Of a stretch of 64,000 nucleotides of DNA, positions 2,011 through 43,910 are shown piece after piece. Every line of letters begins with the position of its first letter. The first letter of the stretch is position 1. The notes beneath the pieces are model-generated. The model made no database searches. It had not been told where the DNA came from and saw only the letters and a list, made by a program, of their open reading frames with translations. Location: positions 48,918,001 to 48,982,000 of the forward strand of contig NC_092357.1 of assembly GCF_963676685.1 (NCBI RefSeq). Direction: 5' to 3'. This DNA comes from Mytilus edulis. Lineage: Eukaryota. The position numbers and the translations under genes were made by a program.

Positions 2011-4590
2011 CATCCTATTAAATATTTAACAGTTCAACCTTTAGAAGTAGTAAATAAGCAGCCTGGTGAATCTCATTCCAAGTTTGTACGATCACGAAAA
2101 ATAAATGAATTAAATTGGATTAAAAAATTACAGACAGTCTACCCTCTCGGTCTTAATGATAATATCATGGGAATTGGCAATATATCAAGAACCGATTCTG
2201 TTAACATTTTGGATATAGTTTCTAAAACTGTTCGTAAAAATCGTTCTCATGGACGCAGAAAAAATCGCAATCAAAGAAAATTTCGGACCAACCATACAAA
2301 TATTTCGGACCTAATTTCCATTTCAAAAAACAACGGCAGACATTATCTGTTAACCAAGCTTTGTTCTTTACCTATAAATAAATTAAATAAAATTTTAGAG
2401 GATTGCAACACAATTTCATATTACAGTCCTAAGTATGAAATTGTCCAAATTATAATGGCATATTGTTATTCTAAACTGTTTCCAAAAATTGATCGCCCTG
2501 AAGATCATAAAAAACATTTTATTAAAATAAAGTATGTCAATAAAGGTTTTGATTTTGTAAATATTGCCGGTATTTTTAACGACCATTCTGTTAAAGACCA
2601 AATTCCTGGATATTTTGATAATACTGAACTCCCTCTCATTTGTTATATTTACAAGAAATCTACCCGAAAATATGTGTTTAATTATAGCCAATTGTGTAAA
2701 GATGTAAATATCACTGAAAATACACCTATGTCGTGTAATTGCAGTAATTCAGAATACACCTATGGACCAATTTCCCATGTTATAACAGGAGACCTTAACA
2801 TCGTTCGCGACCGAGAGTTAAAATCATTCCTCAGTAAAGGACCTAAATATCGTCCCCCGTCAACTATTAACTGGAATGAGTGTCGTAATATCATTAACAA
2901 CTCACTCCGCGCCTACTGTTTGAAATGGGTAAAACGGGAAAAAGCTGACAAAAAATCTTTGGACTCTTTTTTTAATTCAGTAATGAAGATAGTTGATATT
3001 CGAATACAACATTTTAAAGAACATTTTACCCTCAACAAAAACTATAAAAACCCTATTTCGCGTATCAAAAATAAACTAACAGAACTAGCCAAGGAATTTG
3101 TTTTTGTCCCGGCTGATAAAGCTGCGAATAATATCATTATTGTTTGACGTAAATTTTATATAGAGGTTCTGCAAAAGGAAATCACGAATTCACCAACATT
3201 CCAACTGACTTCATTTTCAGAAAACGACATCTGTAACAAACATAAACTTTTAGCTACTTCTTTACAAGCAGAACCAAACACAATGAAAGTCCCAAGTATG
3301 TACTGGCTTCCGAAGCTGCACAAAAAACCTTACAAATATAGATTTATTTCATCTTCCAGCCATTGTTCAACTACTAAATTGTCTGTTTTACTTACTAGTA
3401 CACTTGGTACAATAAAAAACCTGATAATAAATTGTTCAAATAAGGCCTTTGAAAATAGTGGAATTAATTACTTTTGGAGTGTCAAAAACTCGTTGGAAGT
3501 ACTTGATAAATTGCATGCATATATTGGTGATTTTGAATCTGTTCAAAGTTTTGATTTTTCTACCCTATATACCACTTTGCCTCATATTCTTATTAAGAAA
3601 AAATTCACATCCCTAATTAACTGGGCATTTAAAAAGTCGGAATGCGAGTACATATGTTCAAACTCTTTTAGATCATTTTTTAGTAGCAATAAACAAAAGA
3701 ACTATGTCAATTGGACATGCTTTGATACTATTTATGCACTTGAATTTTTACTTGATAACATTTTTGTTCGCTTTGGAGATTCCGTATATCGTCAAGTTAT
3801 TGGAATTCCAATGGGGACTAACTGTGCACCACTTATTGCGGACCTGTTTTTGTATTGTTATGAGTTACAATTTATGACTAAAATTAGCAAAGACCCATCA
3901 AAACAACATTTGATACAAAAATTTAACAATACTTTTAGATATTTGGATGATATATTGGCTCTAAATAATGACGACTTCAGTATGTATACTAAAGAAATTT
4001 ATCCTGTAGAACTTACTTTAAATAAAGCTAATGATAACAATGACCACTGCCCTTTCCTCGATCTTGATATCTATATCATAAACGGGAAGCTTAATACAAA
4101 AATTTATGATAAAAGAGATGATTTTTCATTTCCTATTGTTAATTATCCATTTTTAGATGGTGACGTTCCCTTGTCACCATCTTATGGTGTTTATATATCT
4201 CAACTTGTACGATTCGCTCGTGTATGTAACAATGTATTAGATTTTAGCGAGAGAAATTTATGTATTACTGAAAAATTATTACACCAGGGTTTTCGATATC
4301 ACAAACTGGTCAAAACATTTACTAAATTTTATCACCGGTATAAGGAAATAATTCGTAAATATAACTCAACATGCAGACATCTTATACGTTCAGGTATTTC
4401 ACATCCAAAATTTTATGGAAATATTCTTTATAAAGCACAAAAATGTCAGTATTCTCCTCAGAAACTAACAAAACCTTTAAATAGACTTATCAAAAGGGGA
4501 TATAGTTACGATACTGTTGTCAGGTCATTAAAGATTGCATATTTTGGCTTTAACATTGATTCACTGATAGGGTCTTTGCATCGGAACTAA
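2011..4590 (+). CDS. Naiad endonuclease-RT ORF with single in-frame TGA (3145-3147), putative selenocysteine
   Basis: ORFs 2167-3147 and 3283-4590 share one frame, open from 2011 to TAA at 4590 except ADKAANNIIIV*RKFY; sister element reads ADKAANNVVVVCRK at 43735-43737. Confidence 0.85.
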
Positions 4591-4632
4591 ACACATTTAT
4601 TTCTAAAAAAACAGTTGTTGGCATGACACGGG

Positions 4633-4721
4633 TTATGTTCTTCTCATATATTTTATGATAGTATGATACTAAACCCCTAACGGGAGGGATTGTACCTGAT
4701 ATTCATATGATGAAGACATAA
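4633..4721 (+). promoter_or_regulatory. SECIS element (type II) in Naiad 3' UTR
   Basis: Helix I TTATGTTCTTCTCATAT/ATATGATGAAGACATAA; core ATGA 4655 and TGAT 4697; helix II GTATGAT/ATTGTAC; apical AAA followed by CCC/GGG mini-stem. Confidence 0.85.
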
Positions 4722-4905
4722 TCTTTCAATCAGTTTAATTGAGGTCTGGAGCTGGCATGTCAGTTAACTGCTAGTAGTCTGTTGTTATTTATGTATTATT
4801 GTCATTTTATTTATTTTCTTTTGTTACATCTTTTGATATCAGACTCGGACTTCTCTTGAACTGAATTTTAATGTGCGTATTGTTATTCTTTTACTTTTCT
4901 ACATT

Positions 4906-4996
4906 GGCTAGAGGTATAGGGGGAGGGTTGAGATCTCATAAACATGTTTAACCCCGCCGCAATTTTGCGCCTGTCCCAAGTCAGGAGCCTCTGGCC
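4906..4996 (+). ncRNA. Twister-ribozyme-like fold, circularly permuted type P5, no canonical P1
   Basis: P5 GGCTAGAGGT/GCCTCTGGCC; GGGG-GA-GGG ... T^AA-CCCC-GCC-[GCAA/TTGC]-G-CCTG-TCCC-AAGT-CAGG matches the twister core; predicted cut 4949/4950. Confidence 0.78.
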
Positions 4997-5632
4997 TTTG
5001 TTAGTCTTGTATGATTTTAAATTTTAGTTTCTTGTGTATAATTCGGAGTTTAGTATGACGTCCATTATCACTGTACTATTATGCATATTTTAGGGGCCAG
5101 CTGAAGGACACCTACGGGTGCGGGAATTCTCGCTACATTGAAGACCCATTGGTTGCCTTCGGCTGTTGTTTGCTCTATGGTCGGGTGGTTGTCGCTTTGA
5201 CATATTCACCATTTCCTTTCTCAATTTTATTCGAATAACTTTATTTTCTCAAACTAACCCCTTAAGTAATTCTTAATCATGCTTTTCATGAAAATCATTA
5301 GGGTATATACCCGTAAAACCGGCACTACGGGTATATGCCATCCAATCAAATTGAACGTTAACACACACCATGTGCTTGATATAAACACACACACGTGTTT
5401 ATAGTAAACAATCACTTGACCGTTACAACGTCATGTGACCTATAACTTCAATAAATATATTTATATTCTAATTCGCCAGCTCAAACGAATATACATTATT
5501 AAATAAATAAAACAACACATAAATAGGATAGTGTGCCTACAGCTGTAGCAGCCTTTCGAAAGACAAAAAAAGCCAAGTAGATCTGAAAAGAGAATAATAC
5601 ATATACATGTATATATAGTATATTTATGAAAA

Positions 5633-10620: not shown

Positions 10621-11806
10621 AACTACCATCAGGCGATAAATGAAGTTTCTCGGAGTCAGAGATACCATAATAACGAATGCTGCTACTTTGAACTATAGGC
10701 AAACTTCGAATAACTTTATTTTCTCAAACTAACACCTTAAGTAATACTTAATCACGCTTTTCACGAAAATCATTAGGGCATATACCCGTAAAACCGGCAC
10801 TACGGGTATATGCCATCCAATGAAATGGAACGTAAACACACACTATGTGTTTGATATAAACACACACACGTGTTTTAATTAAACAATCACTTGACCGTTA
10901 CAACATCATGTGACCTGTAACTTTAATAAATATATGTATCACAACATATGAAGATATTAAGTATGACAATAATATTTACAAAGGGGACTAAACTTTTTAT
11001 TAATTCACTAAATAAGTTATAAAACAAAGTTTTGCATGGTGATTGATTTTCATTACCAAATAATTAATTGACATAACATTTGATAAACATAAATATAGCC
11101 TTTAAGTCAAGCAAGAACAAGCAATCAACAATTGTGGTACGAAAAATATTTCAGTGTTAACATTTTTTTCTGAAAGCAATTATTTAAAAATGCATGATAA
11201 GATTTAAGAAAAGAAACTATATTCTTGTGTTTGATGATAAAGTTCTGTCATTTATTTTATATTAATTTATTTGTCATTCGTTTGCATTTAAGGCTGTTTA
11301 ATTTTTTATATAAGGCACAGTAATCAAATGTTTTGCATAACCTACAGCGTTAAAACAGAGAATTAGACGAGATAGTCCACTTTCCCCGACACAGCGAGAA
11401 AATCCCGCCTCTGTAGGCGGGCTTTAGCTGGCCTCTAAACAATTATGTATACTAGTTCTATATTAATTACAAATTATAAAATAGTAATCTTTCTTTACGT
11501 ATATATTTTTCCATAAACAGAAATTCTATAACGATCAATTTACACCTACAGAAAAATAAATGTAGCAGTATGATGAAAATAAGCATGGGGCGTACTCCTA
11601 ATATCTCAATTGCTTGTAAACTCCAACTGTTTGAAGAGCTTCTAATTGGAAAAAACACTTTTGTTATACGAATGCGAGTACTTCAGATAAAGGATAACAA
11701 ACCATATATTGGAAAGGTCGCACCTTGAATTTTTTTTCCTTAAAAATAAATCCTAATTTTACCGATATCCAAACTGCTGTTCTTCAAGCAAACTATCGCT
11801 TACATT

Positions 11807-12252: not shown

Positions 12253-13030
12253 TTTTTAGATTATTGACCCTTTCAATTGTTTAAGTATATATCAACACCT
12301 AAAACTATATCCAGAAGAATCTCCCAATGGTAATGAGCAGATAGTTAATTAAATTAATTAGTTTTGATGTCGGACATTTGTCAATGAGACAGCAACATGA
12401 CGACATCTTGAAAGAAAAATTCAGTCTAATACTAACAATGGCCACTGTCCTTTCCTCGATCTTGATATATATATCATTAACGGAAAGCTGAATACTAAAA
12501 TTTATGATAAAAGAGATGATTTCTCATTTCCTATCGTTAATTATCCTTTTTTAGATGGAGACGTTCCCTTGTCACCATTTTACGGTGTTTATATATCTTA
12601 ACTTGTACGATTCGCTCGTGTATGTAACAATGGTTTAGATTTTACCGAGAGAAATTTATGTATTACTGAAAAATTATTACTTCAGGGTTTTCGATATCAC
12701 AAACTAGTCAAAACATTTACTAAATTTTATCATCGGTATAAGGACATCATTCGTAAATATAGCTCAACATGCAGACTTCTAATATGTTCAGGTATTTCAC
12801 ATCCAATATTTTATGGAAATATTCTTTATAAAGCACAAAAATGTCAATATTCACCTCAGAAGCTAACAAAACCTTTAAATAGACTTATTAAGAAGGGATA
12901 TAGTTACGATACCGTTGTCAGGTCATTAAAGATTGCATATTTTGGCGTTAATATTGATTCACTTATAGAATCTTTGCATCGGAACTAAACACATTTATTA
13001 TTAATAAACCAGTTGTTGGCATGACACGGG

Positions 13031-13119
13031 TTATGTTCTTCTCATATATGTTATGATGGTATGATATTAAACCCCTCACGGGGAGGATTGTGCCTGATAT
13101 TCATATGATGAAGACATAA
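13031..13119 (+). promoter_or_regulatory. SECIS element, second copy
   Basis: ATGAT-GGTATGAT-ATT-AAA-CCCCTCACGGGG-AGG-ATTGTGCC-TGAT. Confidence 0.82.
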
Positions 13120-13303
13120 TTTTTCAATCAGTTTAATTGAAGTCTGGAGCTGGCATGTCAGTTAACTGCTAGTAGTCTGATGTTATTTATGTATTATTGT
13201 CATTCTGTTTATTTTTTTTGGTTACATCTTCTGACATCAGACTCGGACTTCTCTTGAACTGAATTTTAATGTGCGTATTGTTATGAGTTTACTTTTCTGC
13301 ATT

Positions 13304-13394
13304 GGCTAGAGGTATAGGGGAGGGTTGAGATCTCATAAACATGTTTAACCCCGCCGCATTTTTGCGCCTTCTCCCGAGTCAGGAGCCTCTGGCC
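13304..13394 (+). ncRNA. Degenerate copy of twister-like fold
   Basis: Same as 4906-4996 but CCTGTCCCAAG mutated to CCTTCTCCCGAG and one G lost. Confidence 0.6.
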
Positions 13395-16309
13395 TTTGTT
13401 AGTCTTGTATTATGTTAACTTTTAGTTTCTTGTGTACAATTTGGAGTTTAGTATGGCGTTCATTTTCACTGAACTAGTATATATTTGTTTAGGGGCCAGC
13501 TGAAGGACGCATCCGGGTGCGGGAATTTATCGTTGCACTGAAGACCTGTTGGTGACCTTCTGCTATCATCCGATAGTGCTTTATACTACTACAAATTTCA
13601 GGAATAATAGGTACCTACATACTGTTTTATTCATTCCTTATAGAAAATAGGAAAATTAAAAACAAATCAATGTCAAGTAAAATGATAAAAAAAAATAAAG
13701 ATTTGAACTGTTGTAAAACCTAGGATTGTATAGCATATATTATAAAAACCCTTGTTAAAACCAATGATTTTCTTCATCTTACCTTAACCCGAAACATCTA
13801 CTCCAATAACTATTACAGATCTATTTTGGAAACATACAAAAAATAATATTGTTTTTTATTTGCATTTATTTTCATATACCATTATAGTAATTGAAAACCA
13901 ATGCAAAAATATTCAAAGATGAAACATACAAGTGTGTTTTTTTTATATTTGACACCTTCCAAATCAATTCATTGCTTTTGAGAGGTGAAATGTGATTTAA
14001 AGTGATTATAGATAGCATTGTGATAAACTTATTAAAACTATAAAAAAAAAGCATTATGGTAGACTAAATTCTTTACAAAAGTTTTGTTATTTCTTTTTTT
14101 GAGAAAACATAGAGATATATACTTCGAAATAAGAAAATCCTGATTTTGAAAAACCATCTGGTATTCAGAATTATCAATTAAATGAACCATGGTCAAAGCT
14201 ACAGATTTGCTTTTCAAGTATATTTCTAGATGTGATTTACTCTAATTTTTAGCAGTTGAAAATCTAAACTTTAACGGTGACCTATAGTTGTTAATTTCTG
14301 TGTCATTTTGGTCTTTTGTGGATAGTTGTCTCAATGGCAATCATACCACATCTTCTTTTTTATATTTAAGAACTTTATAGAAAATAAAAATCCAAAAGTT
14401 TAATTCCAAACCGGAAACATCTCTCATCTGAATTGATACAGACTAAGGTCGATTATGTACTACACAAAACGTATGATAACCTTCCGAAAGGTGTAAACAT
14501 TTACTTGGCTGTTGTTATTTGGTCTAATTAGGCAATAAAAAGAAATAACCCAAAAATCAAAAAATCAAATTAATCCTCTTGCTGAATCTGTTTCCCACGT
14601 CTGCTCGATCACCGCTTACCATAAGCATGAAAAAAATTAAAAAGCAACAGCAGAACAATCATCCAAAAAAGAAAAAGGCGAATGTAGGGGTATGTGGTAG
14701 GGTTTGAGTAAGTTTCCTTATCGAACGTTAAATCTTTTTAAACGTGAAGTATGATAGTGACGTTACACAGTGAAAAGGTCACAAACACGTACAAGATTAA
14801 GAATACGGAAGCAGAGGGTCTCGAGAACAAATACGGAATTTAAACTTTTATTAAATCTGTATTATAAGTAAACTTATAAACATCATTATTTAATTATTGT
14901 ATTTTTGTCATGAAGCCAACAGTTTTATTAGTCAATATTCAGCCTTTTAAAAGTGTAATTTGCTATAAATGTTGCAAATCATATATTGCCTAGCCATACC
15001 CATTTACATAGATAAATGCACTGCAAATGTGCCTTTCGTGCATTGCATACATTAACTCGGAAATGGCGTTCTGGTTTTTTTTAACCCATACGACTTCTGA
15101 GAGCGTTTGCTATATCTTTTGGTCCCTGTCGTCTGTTTTATGCTTCCGTCTTTGTGTTAATCTTTATACATCGCCGCAGAGTTTTTGTTGTTGTAAAGAT
15201 GTCAATTAGGACTGTAAATTTTGACGTTTGTTATTATCAGGATTACATTTCATTGTTCAAAGCTTTCATAATTGTGATGAGTAACAATGGTAAATGTACT
15301 ATATATGTACACCAGAGGAAAATCTTATAATAAAGGATTTGTAGACACACAAAATATATATTTATATCGGTAAATGTTATACCAAAGACGAATATATATA
15401 TATCGAGTTTTCTGCATTGATACTGTTTATTATCATCCGCATTCCACAATAAAAAAAATTCTTCGGTAAAAGCAGAGAACAAACGAAAAACTTCCAATTG
15501 TATCGAACGGCTGATATTTTGCTATATCTACATCCAGAATACCAGATAAACTGATTATCGTACCTTTTTTGTTTTTTTTCCTTCTTAGAAAGTTTTATGC
15601 TAGATTTTCCTAACGAAAGTAAGATTGACAATATTTCCTCTCATATTTTGTGTCGCTGAAAAATTGGGACGTCGCATATACATACAATGACAATAATCAA
15701 TTTATTTTATATGTATCTGACAACGTCTATGCAAAAGGTGATTTAATTATAACACAGTAACACAATGTTCATTGAATTTGCTTCATGTATCATTTATACA
15801 ATATCATAACCTTTAATTTCAATATATTGTAGTGTTTGATATATAATGGACCAGTACTAATAAATTATATCATGCTTTTAGCACAATTTTCTGAATATTG
15901 TTTATTGGTTCCAAAGAAGTTGTGTTTGACGCTAAAGACATACTGAGGTCGAGAGGTGTATCATTGACCGCTAATGTTGAATATTTCACTATCATTTAGG
16001 TATCTGTTAAAAGAAGGACATCCAAATCTATATATGTAATCGAGTAAGATTTTTATAGAAAGCATCTTATCATAATCAGCAACAGGTTTTTTTTCTACCT
16101 TGTATACCACTATATTCCCCATAAAATCAACTATTTTGTTTATAGTGAACACAACCCTAAATCATGCTTCATAGAGGACCAAGTAATCAGCAAGCTGAAA
16201 TTTCTTATTGACAAAATGTTTTTTTTGGAATTTGGGGGTAGACTTTACCTTCAAAACCTTTGTCAATCAGACTTGTCAGAGAGACTATATATATGTACTC
16301 ACAAACATG

Positions 16310-16680: not shown

Positions 16681-18679
16681 ACTTTTTGTTCCTATCAAAG
16701 ATGATTTATTTATTATTTTGGAATACGGTATCTATGTTTTGTTATCATTGTTGAAGGTCGAACGGTAGTTTGTGGTTTTTGGCATCCATTGGTTTGGTTT
16801 TGATTGACAGTTGGAACATTATCAACCACATCAAAGCTCCTAACTGAATATTATTAACAACATAAATGACGTCATAATTTGATTTTTTTCTGAATATATA
16901 AACAATGTTATTTAGTGCAAAATGGTGTTGCAAAACGTTATAGGACCTGCTTTTGTAATAGCAGGAAAACCAATTGCATCTACATTTCAAGTGAAGTTCT
17001 CACCGATAAGCACCAAAAGAGAAACACACTGTATATTCATATCAAGGAATCCTGCAAAACGGACACCTAACAACTATCCCATCATGTATCAATATAATTG
17101 ACTGACAGCTTATTGTAGTTAATTCATGCATTTCATGTTGACCAATGAACCATGACAATAATGTAAAAATCAGATAAATCCTGCCCAGATTGATCACCTA
17201 ACAATCATATCATACACCAAATATAATTGACCAAGTGCCAAGAATATATTGGAAACAACATTTACACGAACAATTAACACGACCAATGAGCCAAACAAAG
17301 GTTACGGTCACTTTTACCCTACCAGATAGAAATTAACATCTTACAACCATTCAATACACATAATATATTTGAATTATTGCAGTTACTAGAAGCATCAAAA
17401 TGCTGACTGATGAACCATGAATATGAGGTCATAGTCAGATGAACCCTGCCAAACAGACATCAACATAACAGAATCATGCAATTCATCAAAAGACCTTCTT
17501 ATTTGTATATTGTATAAGACCAGAATTTTAAACTTCAAACAAAAGCTAAGCACTCCTGTTTAAACTATTAGAAAGCTAAAATTGAAAACAAGTACACATC
17601 AAATGTTCATATTTTTCAATAAATAAACTATTGAAGAAAAAAAATTAAGCAAGAGCATCAACAAAATACACTATAGAATAGAGAGCAGAAGAGATTTTGT
17701 TGGATTAACAGGATTTTGGTTTATTGTTTGGCAGCCACGTGCACATTATGTGTTTAATACGAACTTCTAACATGACCTGCTTCTTCTGCTTTGTAAACAA
17801 CAGCGCGATGAAATTCTCGATATATCAAGAGATTACATATTGATGGCTGTTACTTTTAACTGCCATGTTAATTCACATGTGTCGTAACCTATGTGCAAAC
17901 ACTATGTCGATTTCGTTGTGTTAAAAAAAAAGAAACAACAGAACCTAGTATTCCTATTCTTATGCATAATTAAAAGAATTAATGTACAAGAGCTTTAAAA
18001 ATGTATCAAATAAAATAACAAAATTAAATGCTACAGTTACATGACGTCATACGAATAAAGACTCTCGAATCGAAGGTTTTCCGTTAAGTATACGCCCTTA
18101 ATTCGGATAATATTGTATTAAAATTAAGTTTTTATTGCATTATTTGCACATTTGTGGATTTTAGCAAGTCAGCATGGTGGCGCACTCATTAGTTAAGACA
18201 TGTCAGCTGTGGGTTTGACAGTAAAAAATAGCCGACGAAAAAAATGTTTGGTTAAAAATTATAAGGATTGAATACATTTTTTTTCTACTGGTTATTTAAG
18301 AAATAATTCAAGCAAGACTCAGATTTATTTGAAATTTGTAGCATTTGTTTTACAGGATCTAAATTAGAACAGCAATACCCACTGCAATCTAAATTTCGAT
18401 TCAGTTTTTAAATTACAGTTTTGTCGTATTAAAATCGAAATAATTCATGGAAGTAATAGATTTGTTGGACATTAACACATGGCCTGTGCCGTGTGTAAAT
18501 GTCAAACAAATATATTACTTCCGTTAATTATTTCTTAATTCTATAAGTAACATCTGCAAAGTTGGTCCATCTTTATTTTAACAACTGCTGAAGAATCCAT
18601 CATTATTTATTTGAAAATGCGTGACAACAAGACTCATCAAAAAAGTTCATGTAATGAATCTTTAACGCGTAGGAAGTAT

Positions 18680-40029: not shown

Positions 40030-41108
40030 GAAGAGGGATTATCTTTACCGTAAATTAGCATACCCCGAACATCCTTTTGTGATGCGGCTCCTTGTGGTAA
40101 AATATCCCCTTTAATAAAAACACTATTCAATGATCTAATTACAGTGTTGACTTGATAATCTTTTAGAATAAGTTTATTTAAACGATTATAAGTATCCAGG
40201 ATCGTTTGTAAATTTCTGGACACAGTCAACAACATTTCCGTAAAATGAGGATGTGCTATCCCGTTTGAAATTAGTTTTCTACAGATACAACAAAACTTCA
40301 AAACCAAATCTTTATATTTATGGAAGAATTTAGTGAAGGTTTAAGTAATTTGGGATAAAGAAATCACTGGCTTAATAATTTACCAGAATCTAAAACGTCC
40401 CCACAGACACGAGCATAGCGAACGAGTTGTGAATTATAAATCCCGTACCAAAGGAAAATCACCATCCAAAAAGGGGAAATTAACCATAGGAAACGAAAAA
40501 TCCTCCCTTTTGTCGTAAATTTTAGTGTGGAGTTTTCCGTGTAAAACGAAAATATCTAAATCTAGGAAAGGACAGTTGTAATCGTTTAAATTTGATTTAT
40601 TTAAAGTAAGTTGATTTGGGTAAATTTCGGCAGTATATTGATAAAGTTCTTGATTATTTTACGAAAAATATCATAAAGTTAACGGTAAGGGTTGTTGAAT
40701 TTTTCAATCAAATGCAATTAAGACGGGTCTTTACTGAGTTTGGTCATAAACCGTGATTCATTACCGTACAAAAACAAGTCTGCTATTAAAGGGGTACAAT
40801 AAGTGCCCATTGGAATACCTTCAACCTGTCGAAAGACTGTGTTGCTGAAAAGTACATCAATACTATCAAGAAGAAAATTAACATCTTCAATCGTCTCATT
40901 ACACCTCAAATAAATAACCAAACGACCATTTGATTAAATACGAAAACTTATGATTGATAAGAGTGTGTGGACGTGTAGTGTAAAGAGTAGAAGAGTCAAA
41001 ACTGTCAACCGTATCAAAAGTACCATCATAAATACGTAATTTATCTAGAACATCCAAAATAAATTGTACACTCCAGAAATAGTTAATTCCACTATTTTCA
41101 TATATTTT
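40030..41108 (-). pseudogene. Decayed Naiad RT, second family (duplicated portion)
   Basis: ENSGINYFWSV, FDSSTLYT, GIPMGT, LIADLFLY; many frameshifts. Confidence 0.88.
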
Positions 41109-42359
41109 ACAGAATGTGGCGGATTTAAACATGTTATCGGGATCCTCCTAACTCGGGACAGTGATGTAACAGTACAACATACGAACGAACTATAAAAATC
41201 AGTAGAAAGAGACTTAACTCATCAGAAAAATACAAATAGAATATACATCTTACAAAAACACAGAGTGGTCGTGGCCGTGTACTTGTATATCCCCACAACA
41301 ACAAAAACACTAAGTACTAATCTGAGAGTACTTGCAGTTACTGATACCTAGTTCAAAGCCACTAACAACTAATAAACAAACAAAAAAAACATGCATCTAA
41401 CTAAATTATCAATCAGTACACATCTAACACCCCCTATACATAATAATTTAACATAATAATCTATTTCTGAAAACATGAAAAAAACGATAAATGACGTATA
41501 ATGATTATACATGGGTTTTTTTTTCTTTCATATCACACCCGTTATCGGCCCTAGGTCATGATATCAGCCTAAGTGACACAGGCTTCAGCAGAAGATATCA
41601 AACAAGAACTATTATAATTTGTTTTTCTTTAAACTTTTAGAAAATAGTTGACAGACAACAAAATTCAAATTCCTTAACTATTATTTATTGTTTTTCTTGA
41701 TATTAAAAGCATTTTATTTATCTTTTGCTGTGTTGCACCAATTATCAAGTTAATAGTCATCAAAGGTACCAGGATTATAATTCAATACGCCAGACGCGCG
41801 TTTCGTGAACATAAGACTCATCAATGACGCTCAGATCAAAATAGTTATAAAGCCAAACAAATACAAAGTTGAAGAGTTTTGATGGCCCAAAATTCCAAAA
41901 GGTTGTGCCAAATACGGCTAAGATAATTATCAACTTTCTTCCGAAAAAAGTGCATAATTTTTCTTTATAATTGTATTTATACTTGAAGCTCTTGGGGCCG
42001 GAACCTGTCTAGAGTTGGACTTAAAATTTGATATATATTTTAAAACATGTTAAATGTTAATTCAGATGCTCCTCAACCATTATGTGAAAGTCTTAAATCA
42101 CTTCCGGTGTTCAACCTTTTGTTGTCGTTTTTAAAAGACTCGATAAACGCAGCCGTTTACAAACAAGTTTCCGGAAATGCACGAAGTTGCTTGCATGCGA
42201 TGAACGTCACGGAAAATGACATCTTTAATTGGTTTTACATAGGCGGTAATGGTAACGTTTTATCCTGTTGCATACTCCATATGATAAACTTGGATATGTA
42301 TGCTAGCTCGTTTCGAAACTATGAAACTTTCACATATGTGGTTAAATTTTCAGGGTACG

Positions 42360-43910
42360 AAGAGGGATTATCTTTACCGTAAATTAGCATACCCCGAACA
42401 TCCTTTTGTGATGCGGCTCCTTGTGGTAAAATATCCCCTTTAATAAAAACACTATTCAATGATCTAATTACAGTGTTGACTTGATAATCTTTTAGAATAA
42501 GTTTATTTAAACGATTATAAGTATCCAGGATCGTTTGTAAATTTCTGGACACAGTCAACAACATTTCCGTAAAATGAGGATGTGCTATCCCGTTTGAAAT
42601 TAGTTTTCTACAGATACAACAAAACTTCAAAACCAAATCTTTATATTTATGGAAGAATTTAGTGAAGGTTTAAGTAATTTGGGATAAAGAAATCACTGGC
42701 TTAATAATTTACCAGAATCTAAAACGTCCCCACAGACACGAGCATAGCGAACGAGTTGTGAATTATAAATCCCGTACCAAAGGAAAATCACCATCCAAAA
42801 AGGGGAAATTAACCATAGGAAACGAAAAATCCTCCCTTTTGTCGTAAATTTTAGTGTGGAGTTTTCCGTGTAAAACCAAAATATCTAAATCTAGGAAAGG
42901 ACAGTTGTAACCGTTTAAATTTGATTTATTTAAAGTAAGTTGATTTGGGTAAATTTCGGCAGTATATTGATAAAGTTCTTGATTATTTTACGAAAAATAT
43001 CATAAAGTTAACGGTAAGGGTTGTTGAATTTTTCAATCAAATGCAATTAAGACGGGTCTTTACTGAGTTTGGTCATAAACCGTGATTCATTACCGTAAAA
43101 AAACAAGTCTGCTATTAAAGGGGTACAATAAGTGCCCATTGGAATACCTTTAACCTGTCGAAAGACTGTGTTGCTGAAAAGTACATCAATACTATCAAGA
43201 AGAAAATTAACATCTTCAATCGTCTCATTACACCTCAAATAAATAACCAAACGACCATTTGATTAAATACGAAAACTTATGATTGATAAGAGTGTGTGGA
43301 CGTGTAGTGTAAAGAGTAGAAAATTCAAAACTGTCAACCGTATCAAAAGTACCATCATAAATACGTAATTTATCTAGAACATCCAAAATAAATTGTACAC
43401 TCCAGAAATAGTTAATTCCACTATTTTCATATATTTTATTATAATAGTTTATGATAAGCTCTTTGTTATTAGTTAAGGAATTTGTCAAAAGCATGCACTG
43501 AGATATTAGTTGTTGAACACTTACTGAAGGCTGAGATGAAACGATATCTTACTGGTTTCTTTGTGTAGTTTAGGTAACCAATACATTGAAGGGACTTTCA
43601 AATGTTCAGAAGAAGCCTTAAGCTGTGATGTGGTTATATGTTTGTTTACTATAATGCTCTCTGTTCAGCGCACGTACTTGAATGCTAGGTGAATTTAAAA
43701 TTTCAATTTTAAGAATGTCGGTGTAGCATTTACGGCAGACCACAACCACGTTGTTGGCAGCTTTGTCAGCCGTTACAATTACATCCGCTTTGAAAGTTCT
43801 TGGAATTTAATTCTTATACTGGAAATAGGCGTCTTATGTACTCTAATACTTATCTCTAAACTATTACCAAAAATGTAGTATTCAATATTCTACAACATTT
43901 ATACATTTAT
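42360..43910 (-). pseudogene. Decayed Naiad RT, second family, with Cys at the Sec-equivalent site
   Basis: ADKAANNVVVVCRK, KVPSMYWLPKLHK, GIPMG. Confidence 0.88.

Follow-up and report, generated by a model that had tools for sequence, protein, structure and literature searches.

No group of retroelements is linked to a self-cleaving ribozyme as consistently as the Penelope-like elements. In the canonical elements these ribozymes are minimal hammerheads lying in the pseudo-LTRs (Cervera and de la Pena 2014; Lunse et al. 2017; reviewed in PMC6765202, PMC7761336); placed in the terminal repeats and having one weak helix, they work in dimeric form, and their proposed function is to trim tandem transcripts (PMC6765202, PMC7761336). 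The Naiads, which are reported to lack the canonical hammerhead and to show frequent 5' truncation and partial tandems, are the stated exception among Penelope-like elements as regards the ribozyme (PMC8557442). The window examined here, the whole stretch of 64,000 nucleotides of Mytilus edulis DNA that was analysed, raises the question of whether this exception holds, as a first-pass annotation had read positions 4906-4996 of the plus strand as a permuted twister in the 3' UTR of a Naiad. The analysis makes it quite probable that the motif is a twister-class self-cleaving ribozyme module of the circular permutation P5, conserved in the 3' UTR of the Naiads of this genome.

The element that carries the motif is a 5'-truncated copy at 2012-5230 (plus strand), which starts inside the end of the endonuclease domain and is flanked by a 2-bp target duplication (TC). 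Its reverse transcriptase (RT) reading frame (2167-4590, plus strand) contains a KR-rich block, a CxC motif (CNC), a DKA motif (PADKAANN) and the RT motifs, and the codons of the translated frame include one in-frame TGA at 3145-3147, eight residues past DKA. DKA in place of DKG and a CxC upstream of it are diagnostic of Naiads, in which the UGA eight residues past DKA is a selenocysteine site (PMC8557442). A SECIS-like element is present in the 3' UTR at 4645-4709 (plus strand), 55 nt past the stop codon, where Rfam SECIS_1 matches over its full length with 30.9 bits (gathering threshold 35; E 0.00046). Pfam returned no family for the two ORF pieces of the window copy, and the assignment was made by comparison of the motifs with the description in PMC8557442. 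Of the GIY-YIG endonuclease the window copy retains the last ~50 residues only. Two fuller copies, L141 (RT 99% identical) and L011, carry an N-terminal GIY-YIG domain in frame with the RT, in which IIY...YVG and a zinc-finger-like CxxxxUxxC were recognised by eye, together with three further in-frame TGA codons at conserved endonuclease cysteines. Judged by these motifs, the host is a genuine Naiad. With its in-frame TGA codons and SECIS-like element it appears to encode a selenoprotein, as reported for the Naiads of two clams and two spiders (PMC8557442).

The ribozyme fold begins ~315 nt past the stop codon and ends 234 nt before the 3' end of the element, the tail beyond it (4997-5230, plus strand) running to a 3' terminus that is common to the copies. 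The location in the 3' UTR of a Naiad, as proposed initially, is borne out by the DKA, CxC, UGA and SECIS features and by the collinearity of the motif with the RT gene. At 10680-10735, 5 kb away, a further copy of the repeat around the element still has its target site unfilled; comparison with 1985-2011 and 5231-5260 identifies the window copy as a clean, simple insertion with the 2-bp duplication (TC). The copy is a simple 5'-truncated insertion with no terminal repeat or pseudo-LTR; the segments 5460-5555 and 1652-1748, considered as a candidate pseudo-LTR, were ruled out, as both belong to the repeat that received the insertion. The mir-10-like match at 5300-5341, below threshold with 24 bits and present on each strand, corresponds to a hairpin-forming inverted repeat of the flanking repeat, outside the Naiad. 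Rfam searches of the window and of a 3.7-kb stretch revealed no hammerhead in the element.

When read box by box, the sequence at 4906-4996 (plus strand, as are all the parts described below) comprises the complete twister boxes in type-P5 order, with the same layout as the published twisters tabulated for Schistosoma mansoni, including GAGGG followed by UUG (PMC8501958). The permuted ribozyme opens with the 5' strand of P5 (GGCUAGAGGU, 4906-4915), which pairs with the 3' strand (GCCUCUGGCC, 4987-4996) over 10 bp, two of them G.U. The junction AUA (4916-4918) leads to the 3'-side strand of P2 (GGGG, 4919-4922), the partner of CCCC at 4952-4955, and this is followed by GAGGG (4923-4927), in which G4923 and A4924 occupy the positions of G45 and A46 of the Osa-1-4 twister and GGG 4925-4927 provides one strand of the pseudoknot T1. 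The 21-nt segment between GAGGG and UAA (4928-4948) has two palindromes in place of P1, namely box X (UGAGAUCUCA with the core GAGAUCUC, 4929-4938), which sits at the expected site of the P1 3' strand, and box Y (AAACAUGUUU, 4940-4949), whose last base is the predicted scissile U4949. Loop L1 is UAA (4949-4951), the predicted scissile bond U4949/A4950 being placed by alignment to Rfam Twister-P5 and to the table in PMC8501958. Directly 3' of UAA lie CCCC of P2 (4952-4955), GC of the pseudoknot T2 (4956-4957), a P3 hairpin CGCA-AUUU-UGCG with a CGCA/UGCG stem (4958-4969) and P4 (4970-4985), formed by CCUG 4970-4973 and CAGG 4982-4985 around the loop UCCCAAGU (GUCCCAAGU), which corresponds to the GUCCCAAGY of twisters; the single base A4986 separates P4 from the 3' strand of P5. 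GGG 4925-4927 can pair with CCC 4975-4977 of L4 in T1, and T2 joins GC to GU 4980-4981 through a G4956-U4981 wobble and C4957-G4980.

Alignment to the published layout places G13, G30, A46 and G48 of Osa-1-4, the only positions reported to be intolerant of any change (PMC5113685), at G4956, G4980, A4924 and G4926, so that all four are present. There are two departures from the standard twister, the absence of P1 and the replacement of AAGC by AAGU, the latter equivalent to C31U of Osa-1-4. In that ribozyme C31U is tolerated, loop L2 is permissive to mutation and P1 is not essential (PMC5113685), and a survey of more than 2000 natural twisters reports that P1 imperfections made no difference and that the two-pair pseudoknot accommodated wobbles (PMC11662667). 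A type-P5 twister fold, with all of its core nucleotides, is present in the window. The features listed in the first-pass annotation (the 10-bp closing stem, P2, P4, the pseudoknots CCC/GGG and GC/GT, and the UAA, GA and AAG residues) were all recovered at the coordinates given there, and the circularly permuted order that it proposed is supported by the order of the boxes and by a full-length alignment to the Rfam model.

In that alignment, all 58 positions of Twister-P5 (RF02684) were matched at 4919-4985 with 23.4 bits and E 0.0023, when 4895-5005 (111 nt) was searched against 4227 families. The covariance-model check suggested at the outset gave a divided answer, as the directed search produced an end-to-end alignment and the score stayed under the gathering threshold of 37.6 bits. 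The match surfaced only with a query of ~110 nt and was filtered out with longer ones: no Rfam twister was obtained in the whole window at the gathering score, in 700 nt at E<=10 or in 3.7 kb at E<=5. RF02684 searched over the whole genome gave no match among the 79 of 31,236 candidates that were scored. The model leaves P5, P3 and the pseudoknots unscored and penalises the P3 insertion. The control, a type-P1 twister of metagenomic origin, was likewise sub-threshold (60.9 against 67.2 bits), and the missed threshold is therefore weak evidence against membership. Since about seven chance matches of 23 bits are expected at genome scale, by extrapolation from the E-value, the Rfam score alone cannot carry the case and other evidence is needed. 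The folding energy of the motif is -39.3 kcal/mol on the plus strand (z -3.06), with a z-score of -0.19 on the minus strand. A descriptor of the core (GAGGG, gap, TAA NNNN GCC, gap, CC NN TCCCAAG) has 11,900 exact matches in the 1.37-Gb genome and, read backwards as a control, none.

The abundance and the boundaries of the copies help to place the motif. A 27-mer of its 3' half, allowing up to two mismatches, occurs at 17,983 places in the 1.37-Gb genome, and the motif is carried by about 18,000 genomic copies, over half of them with an intact core; a 34-mer proximal to the 5' end of the element occurs at 669 places. All of the 30 copies sampled through the 27-mer share a 3' end at ~5230 and have scattered 5' ends. 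[quoted passage not shown] Tandem arrangements are indicated by 5' markers that recur in pairs at a spacing of 4031-4032 bp, and by L011, where a fuller copy is preceded, 747 nt upstream, by a partial one. The window itself contains a second, older 5'-truncated copy (12426-13564, plus strand; 91% identical to 4028-5164) with a decayed twister at 13304-13394 (plus strand), in which one G before GAGGG has been lost and P4 and L4 are mutated. Most of the matches that the core descriptor gave in metagenomes were due to chance, a few were type-P1 twisters of bacteria, and the sole one of Naiad type was L141. This contig (Ga0206127_1020577) is filed as metagenome, its protein is 99.4-99.8% identical to that of the window element, and it is probably host animal DNA in a metagenome sample.

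Pattern searches that excluded the family of the window element identified other Naiad families with the complete core, whose RTs are 45-67% identical to that of the window. Family B, found at ~6,650 places, has the palindrome GGGAUCCC for GAGAUCUC, ACAU/AUGU for GCA/UGC in P3, AAGC for AAGU, and a P5 composed of two helices (CAGGU/GCCUG and ACCACUG/CAGUGGU). Its RT coding sequence, 45-52% identical to that of the window, is located ~340 nt upstream of the motif, the distance observed for the RT gene in family D as well, and in a third family the RT is 67% identical to that of the window. A family-B copy aligned end to end with Twister-P5 (21.6 bits, E 0.0088, below the gathering threshold of 37.6). 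Between the 3' UTRs of the window element and six family-B copies, the identity is 0.85 in the core (4919-4985) and 0.61 elsewhere. Decayed modules resembling family B are also present in the window, on the minus strand: one of a different Naiad-type family at 38753-38850, beside a 2.33-kb tandem repeat with an RT relic, and a further one at 1060-1160. The tandem repeat (38777-43438, minus strand) consists of two 2.33-kb units, 99% identical, which contain the decayed remains of a Naiad-type RT, ~70% identical to 3789-4243 at the nucleotide level, and its boundary falls within the decayed family-B twister module. Elsewhere, on contig 1 of genome G000 (8037817-8155842, minus strand), six copies of one twister variant (P4 CCGG, P2 CCCU) follow each other at spacings of ~10-43 kb, an arrangement suggestive of a segmental array or of a long-period tandem.

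The structure was assessed on an alignment of 51 natural copies; in about 30 of its rows the core boxes (GAGGG, TAA, UCCCAAG) had been imposed by the search patterns, and the stems were free to vary. RNAalifold on the raw MAFFT alignment recovered three T1 pairs only, because the stem length differs between families, and pairs were therefore counted on a stated structure. In this structure 89.4% of the pair cells are paired, as compared with 31-46% when the partners are slid, and the covariation score of 0.113 exceeds that of shuffled alignments (0.066 +/- 0.005), none of the 500 shuffles reaching it and all the slid controls scoring lower. The fifth pair of P5 is G-C in 21 sequences and C-G in 21; the second pair of P3 is G-C, as in the window, in 16 and A-U in 27, and the third is U-A in one family. 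Such counts are of sequences and not of events, the copies sharing ancestry, and independent compensating events are estimated at 6 to 8. P2, P4 and T1 hardly vary between the copies: 84% of the P2 cells are paired, two copies preserving a P2 pair through changes on both sides (e.g. L050, GAGG/CCUC), 97% of the P4 cells are paired, and T1 is G-C in 50-51 of the 51 sequences, in pairs that never vary and so offer no covariation evidence, their boxes being fixed by the search for about 30 rows. TAA is invariant in the 51 rows, with the same restriction for about 30 of them. Other families have AAGC at T2. Positions that pairing alone would not fix, namely G4923, A4924, A4950 and A4978-A4979, are unchanged across the families. 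As judged from this alignment, the predicted ribozyme fold is shown to be conserved across diverged Naiad families with compensating changes, and the motif is, on comparative grounds, maintained by selection across them.

No P1 helix can form, the UUGAG that follows GAGGG being unable to pair with the CAUGUU that precedes U4949, and boxes X and Y cannot pair with each other either. The strongest covariation in the alignment is that of the two palindromes and not of the catalytic stems. In other families box X reads GGGAUCCC, UGGCGCCA, AGGCGCCU, AAGCGCUU or UGCGCA, with self-complementarity retained throughout; its pair 2/7 is divided equally between A-U and G-C (21 sequences each), pair 4/5 is A-U, C-G or U-G, and pair 1/8 is G-C or U-A. 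The centre of box Y changes from AU to UA (CUAG) in several copies, and in one copy (L066:1501-1567, minus strand) a 16-nt perfect palindrome, AAACUACAUGUAGUUU, stands just before the cleavage site in place of the usual 10 nt, an insertion which by keeping the self-complementarity argues that box Y is selected for pairing. Among 45 distinct versions of the segment, a perfect palindrome of at least 6 nt occurs in the first 13 nt in 58% and in the last 12 nt in 69%, the corresponding shuffle figures being 14% and 18%. Box X cannot fold on itself because its loop would be of 2 nt, and the simplest reading is that two RNAs would pair through X, with a predicted duplex energy of -10.8 to -15 kcal/mol; box Y might form either a weak hairpin or a duplex. 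In the minimum-energy fold of the monomer, GGGUUGAG at 4925-4932 pairs with UUUAACCC at 4947-4954, and the T1 strand and the cleavage site are buried. This helix overlaps X, so that pairing via X would open it, in the manner of a switch.

Evidence on cleavage itself was sought in raw RNA reads and in the insertions. The reads of run X24 show neither a dip nor a pile-up of molecule ends at 4949/4950 or elsewhere in 4903-4995, the depth across this interval being 591, 580 and 572 in one orientation and 381, 334 and 333 in the other. This library is not end-specific, its RNA strand is uncertain, and the products of cleavage may have been unstable. As there are thousands of core-intact copies, efficient cutting by the monomer should have been visible in these reads. 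The possibility that cleaved 3' fragments seed short copies beginning at 4950 is not supported: among the 30 copies, which were chosen irrespective of their upstream half, just two have a 5' end no more than 12 nt away from the site, a proportion close to the chance expectation. Cleavage would thus seem to be slow or conditional, with loss of activity as the main rival. The proposal that a twister, and not a hammerhead, processes the terminal repeat of the Naiad therefore stands in part: the twister fold is there and the hammerhead is absent, but the window copy has no pseudo-LTR and the RNA reads have no ends at 4949/4950.

If the twister reading is correct, the RNA would cut itself between U4949 and A4950 to leave a 2',3'-cyclic phosphate and a 5'-OH, and G4923 and A4950 would be used as G45 and A7 are used by the Osa-1-4 twister. 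With two self-complementary boxes replacing P1, efficient cutting would probably need two copies paired with each other, as in the dimeric hammerheads of Penelope-like elements. By analogy with these hammerheads, the most likely role would be the trimming of read-through or tandem transcripts to unit length.

The explanation that competes most directly with a functional ribozyme is a descendant of a twister that no longer cuts, the fold being retained as a structured signal of the 3' UTR, either as a binding site for the RT or for RNA-RNA pairing via the palindromes in packaging or template switching. It would account for the RNA reads without sign of cleavage and the insertions without a pile-up at the site, for covariation that is stronger in the palindromes than in the catalytic stems, and for the difficulty that cutting at this site would cost the RNA its last 281 nt, the tail needed for target-primed reverse transcription. 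It is nevertheless regarded as unlikely, as the catalytic nucleotides, including G4923, A4924, A4950 and A4978-A4979, are the same in all the families, and a mere scaffold would have been free to drift at these positions. A resemblance to twisters arising by chance in a G/C-rich patch of an abundant repeat would agree with the sub-threshold Rfam scores, with the three T1 pairs given by RNAalifold and with the thermodynamic z-scores of the family B, C and D copies, which are unremarkable; yet about 20 specified core positions occur in order, five helices and two pseudoknots are rightly placed, the stems change in a compensating manner between families and the reversed pattern has no match, and such a coincidence is very improbable.

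Equally little probability is given to the motif being an unrelated short repeat, SINE- or MITE-like, that merely adjoins the Naiad. The excess of the 27-mer over the 5' part of the element (17,983 against 669 places) might be cited for it, as might the depth of DNA contigs, which over 4965-4995 is ~3x that of the flanks. The copies are, however, unbroken from the RT gene through the motif to the common 3' end, with the gradient of copy number that 5' truncation gives, the RT gene again lies upstream at much the same distance in families B and D, and the intact, near-identical L141 carries the endonuclease, the RT, the motif and the tail contiguously. In the RNA reads, the depth with the first mate on the plus strand rises over 4872-5026 only, and both the raised DNA depth and the rise in RNA depth are best explained by sister Naiad families having only the twister core in common with this element. 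The short-repeat alternative is largely refuted.

A more specific form of the preferred twister reading, offered tentatively and given less than an even chance, is that the Naiads have swapped the hammerhead for a twister in which covarying palindromes stand in for P1 and cleavage is gated by RNA-RNA pairing, so that only tandem or co-packaged transcripts are processed to unit length and possibly into circles. The monomer would be held in the inactive helix between GGGUUGAG and UUUAACCC until X pairs with a second copy, upon which the helix would open, T1 would form and both RNAs would be cut. Gating of this kind would explain how tens of thousands of core-intact copies could reside in host transcripts without visible cleavage.

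A conserved twister in Naiads, if confirmed, would remove the exception among the Penelope-like elements and imply that what these elements need is a ribozyme and not the hammerhead as such. It would also provide a second retroelement host for twisters, one with the ribozyme towards the 3' end and not, as in the RTE elements, at the 5' end, and the palindromes replacing P1 would represent a natural twister that may work only as a pair. The roughly 12,000 core-intact copies in one genome raise the question of how the host transcripts tolerate them. The literature search found no paper that ties twisters to Penelope-like elements, those containing both words naming them side by side only, which agrees with the initial view that the pairing is undescribed. 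Bivalves are among the groups with predicted twisters, in a survey that dealt with type-P1 forms and names no host element (PMC11662667). The twister class is accordingly not wholly new in bivalves; the link to Naiads, as a new host and a new variant, is new.

Among known systems, the Naiads of clams and spiders (PMC8557442) resemble the present element in the GIY-YIG domain, CxC, DKA, the UGA codons eight residues past DKA and at the endonuclease cysteines, and the SECIS past the stop codon; their description differs in making no mention of a twister, its search for ribozymes having used hammerhead descriptors only. The hammerheads of Penelope-like elements are comparable as small self-cleaving motifs near the 3' end or in the terminal repeat, with a helix too weak in the monomer, a palindrome that suggests a dimer and frequent tandems, but they belong to a ribozyme class other than that of the Naiad twister fold. 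The Perere-3 (RTE) twisters of Schistosoma mansoni (PMC8501958) share a non-LTR-type host in an invertebrate, GAGGG followed by UUGG, GUCCCAAGC and a weak P1; they are of type P1 and lie at the 5' end, where they define the 5' terminus of the RNA, whereas the Naiad motif is of type P5 and is found in the 3' UTR, 234 nt from the 3' end, of a Penelope-like host. The closest relatives in structure are the type-P5 twisters (RF02684, clan CL00120), with which the Naiad motif has in common the order of the elements, the core nucleotides, P2, P4, L4, both pseudoknots and the optional P3 and P5 in the expected places, and from which it is distinguished by the lack of P1, a T2 with G.U, a sub-threshold score and a host that is an animal retroelement with thousands of copies.
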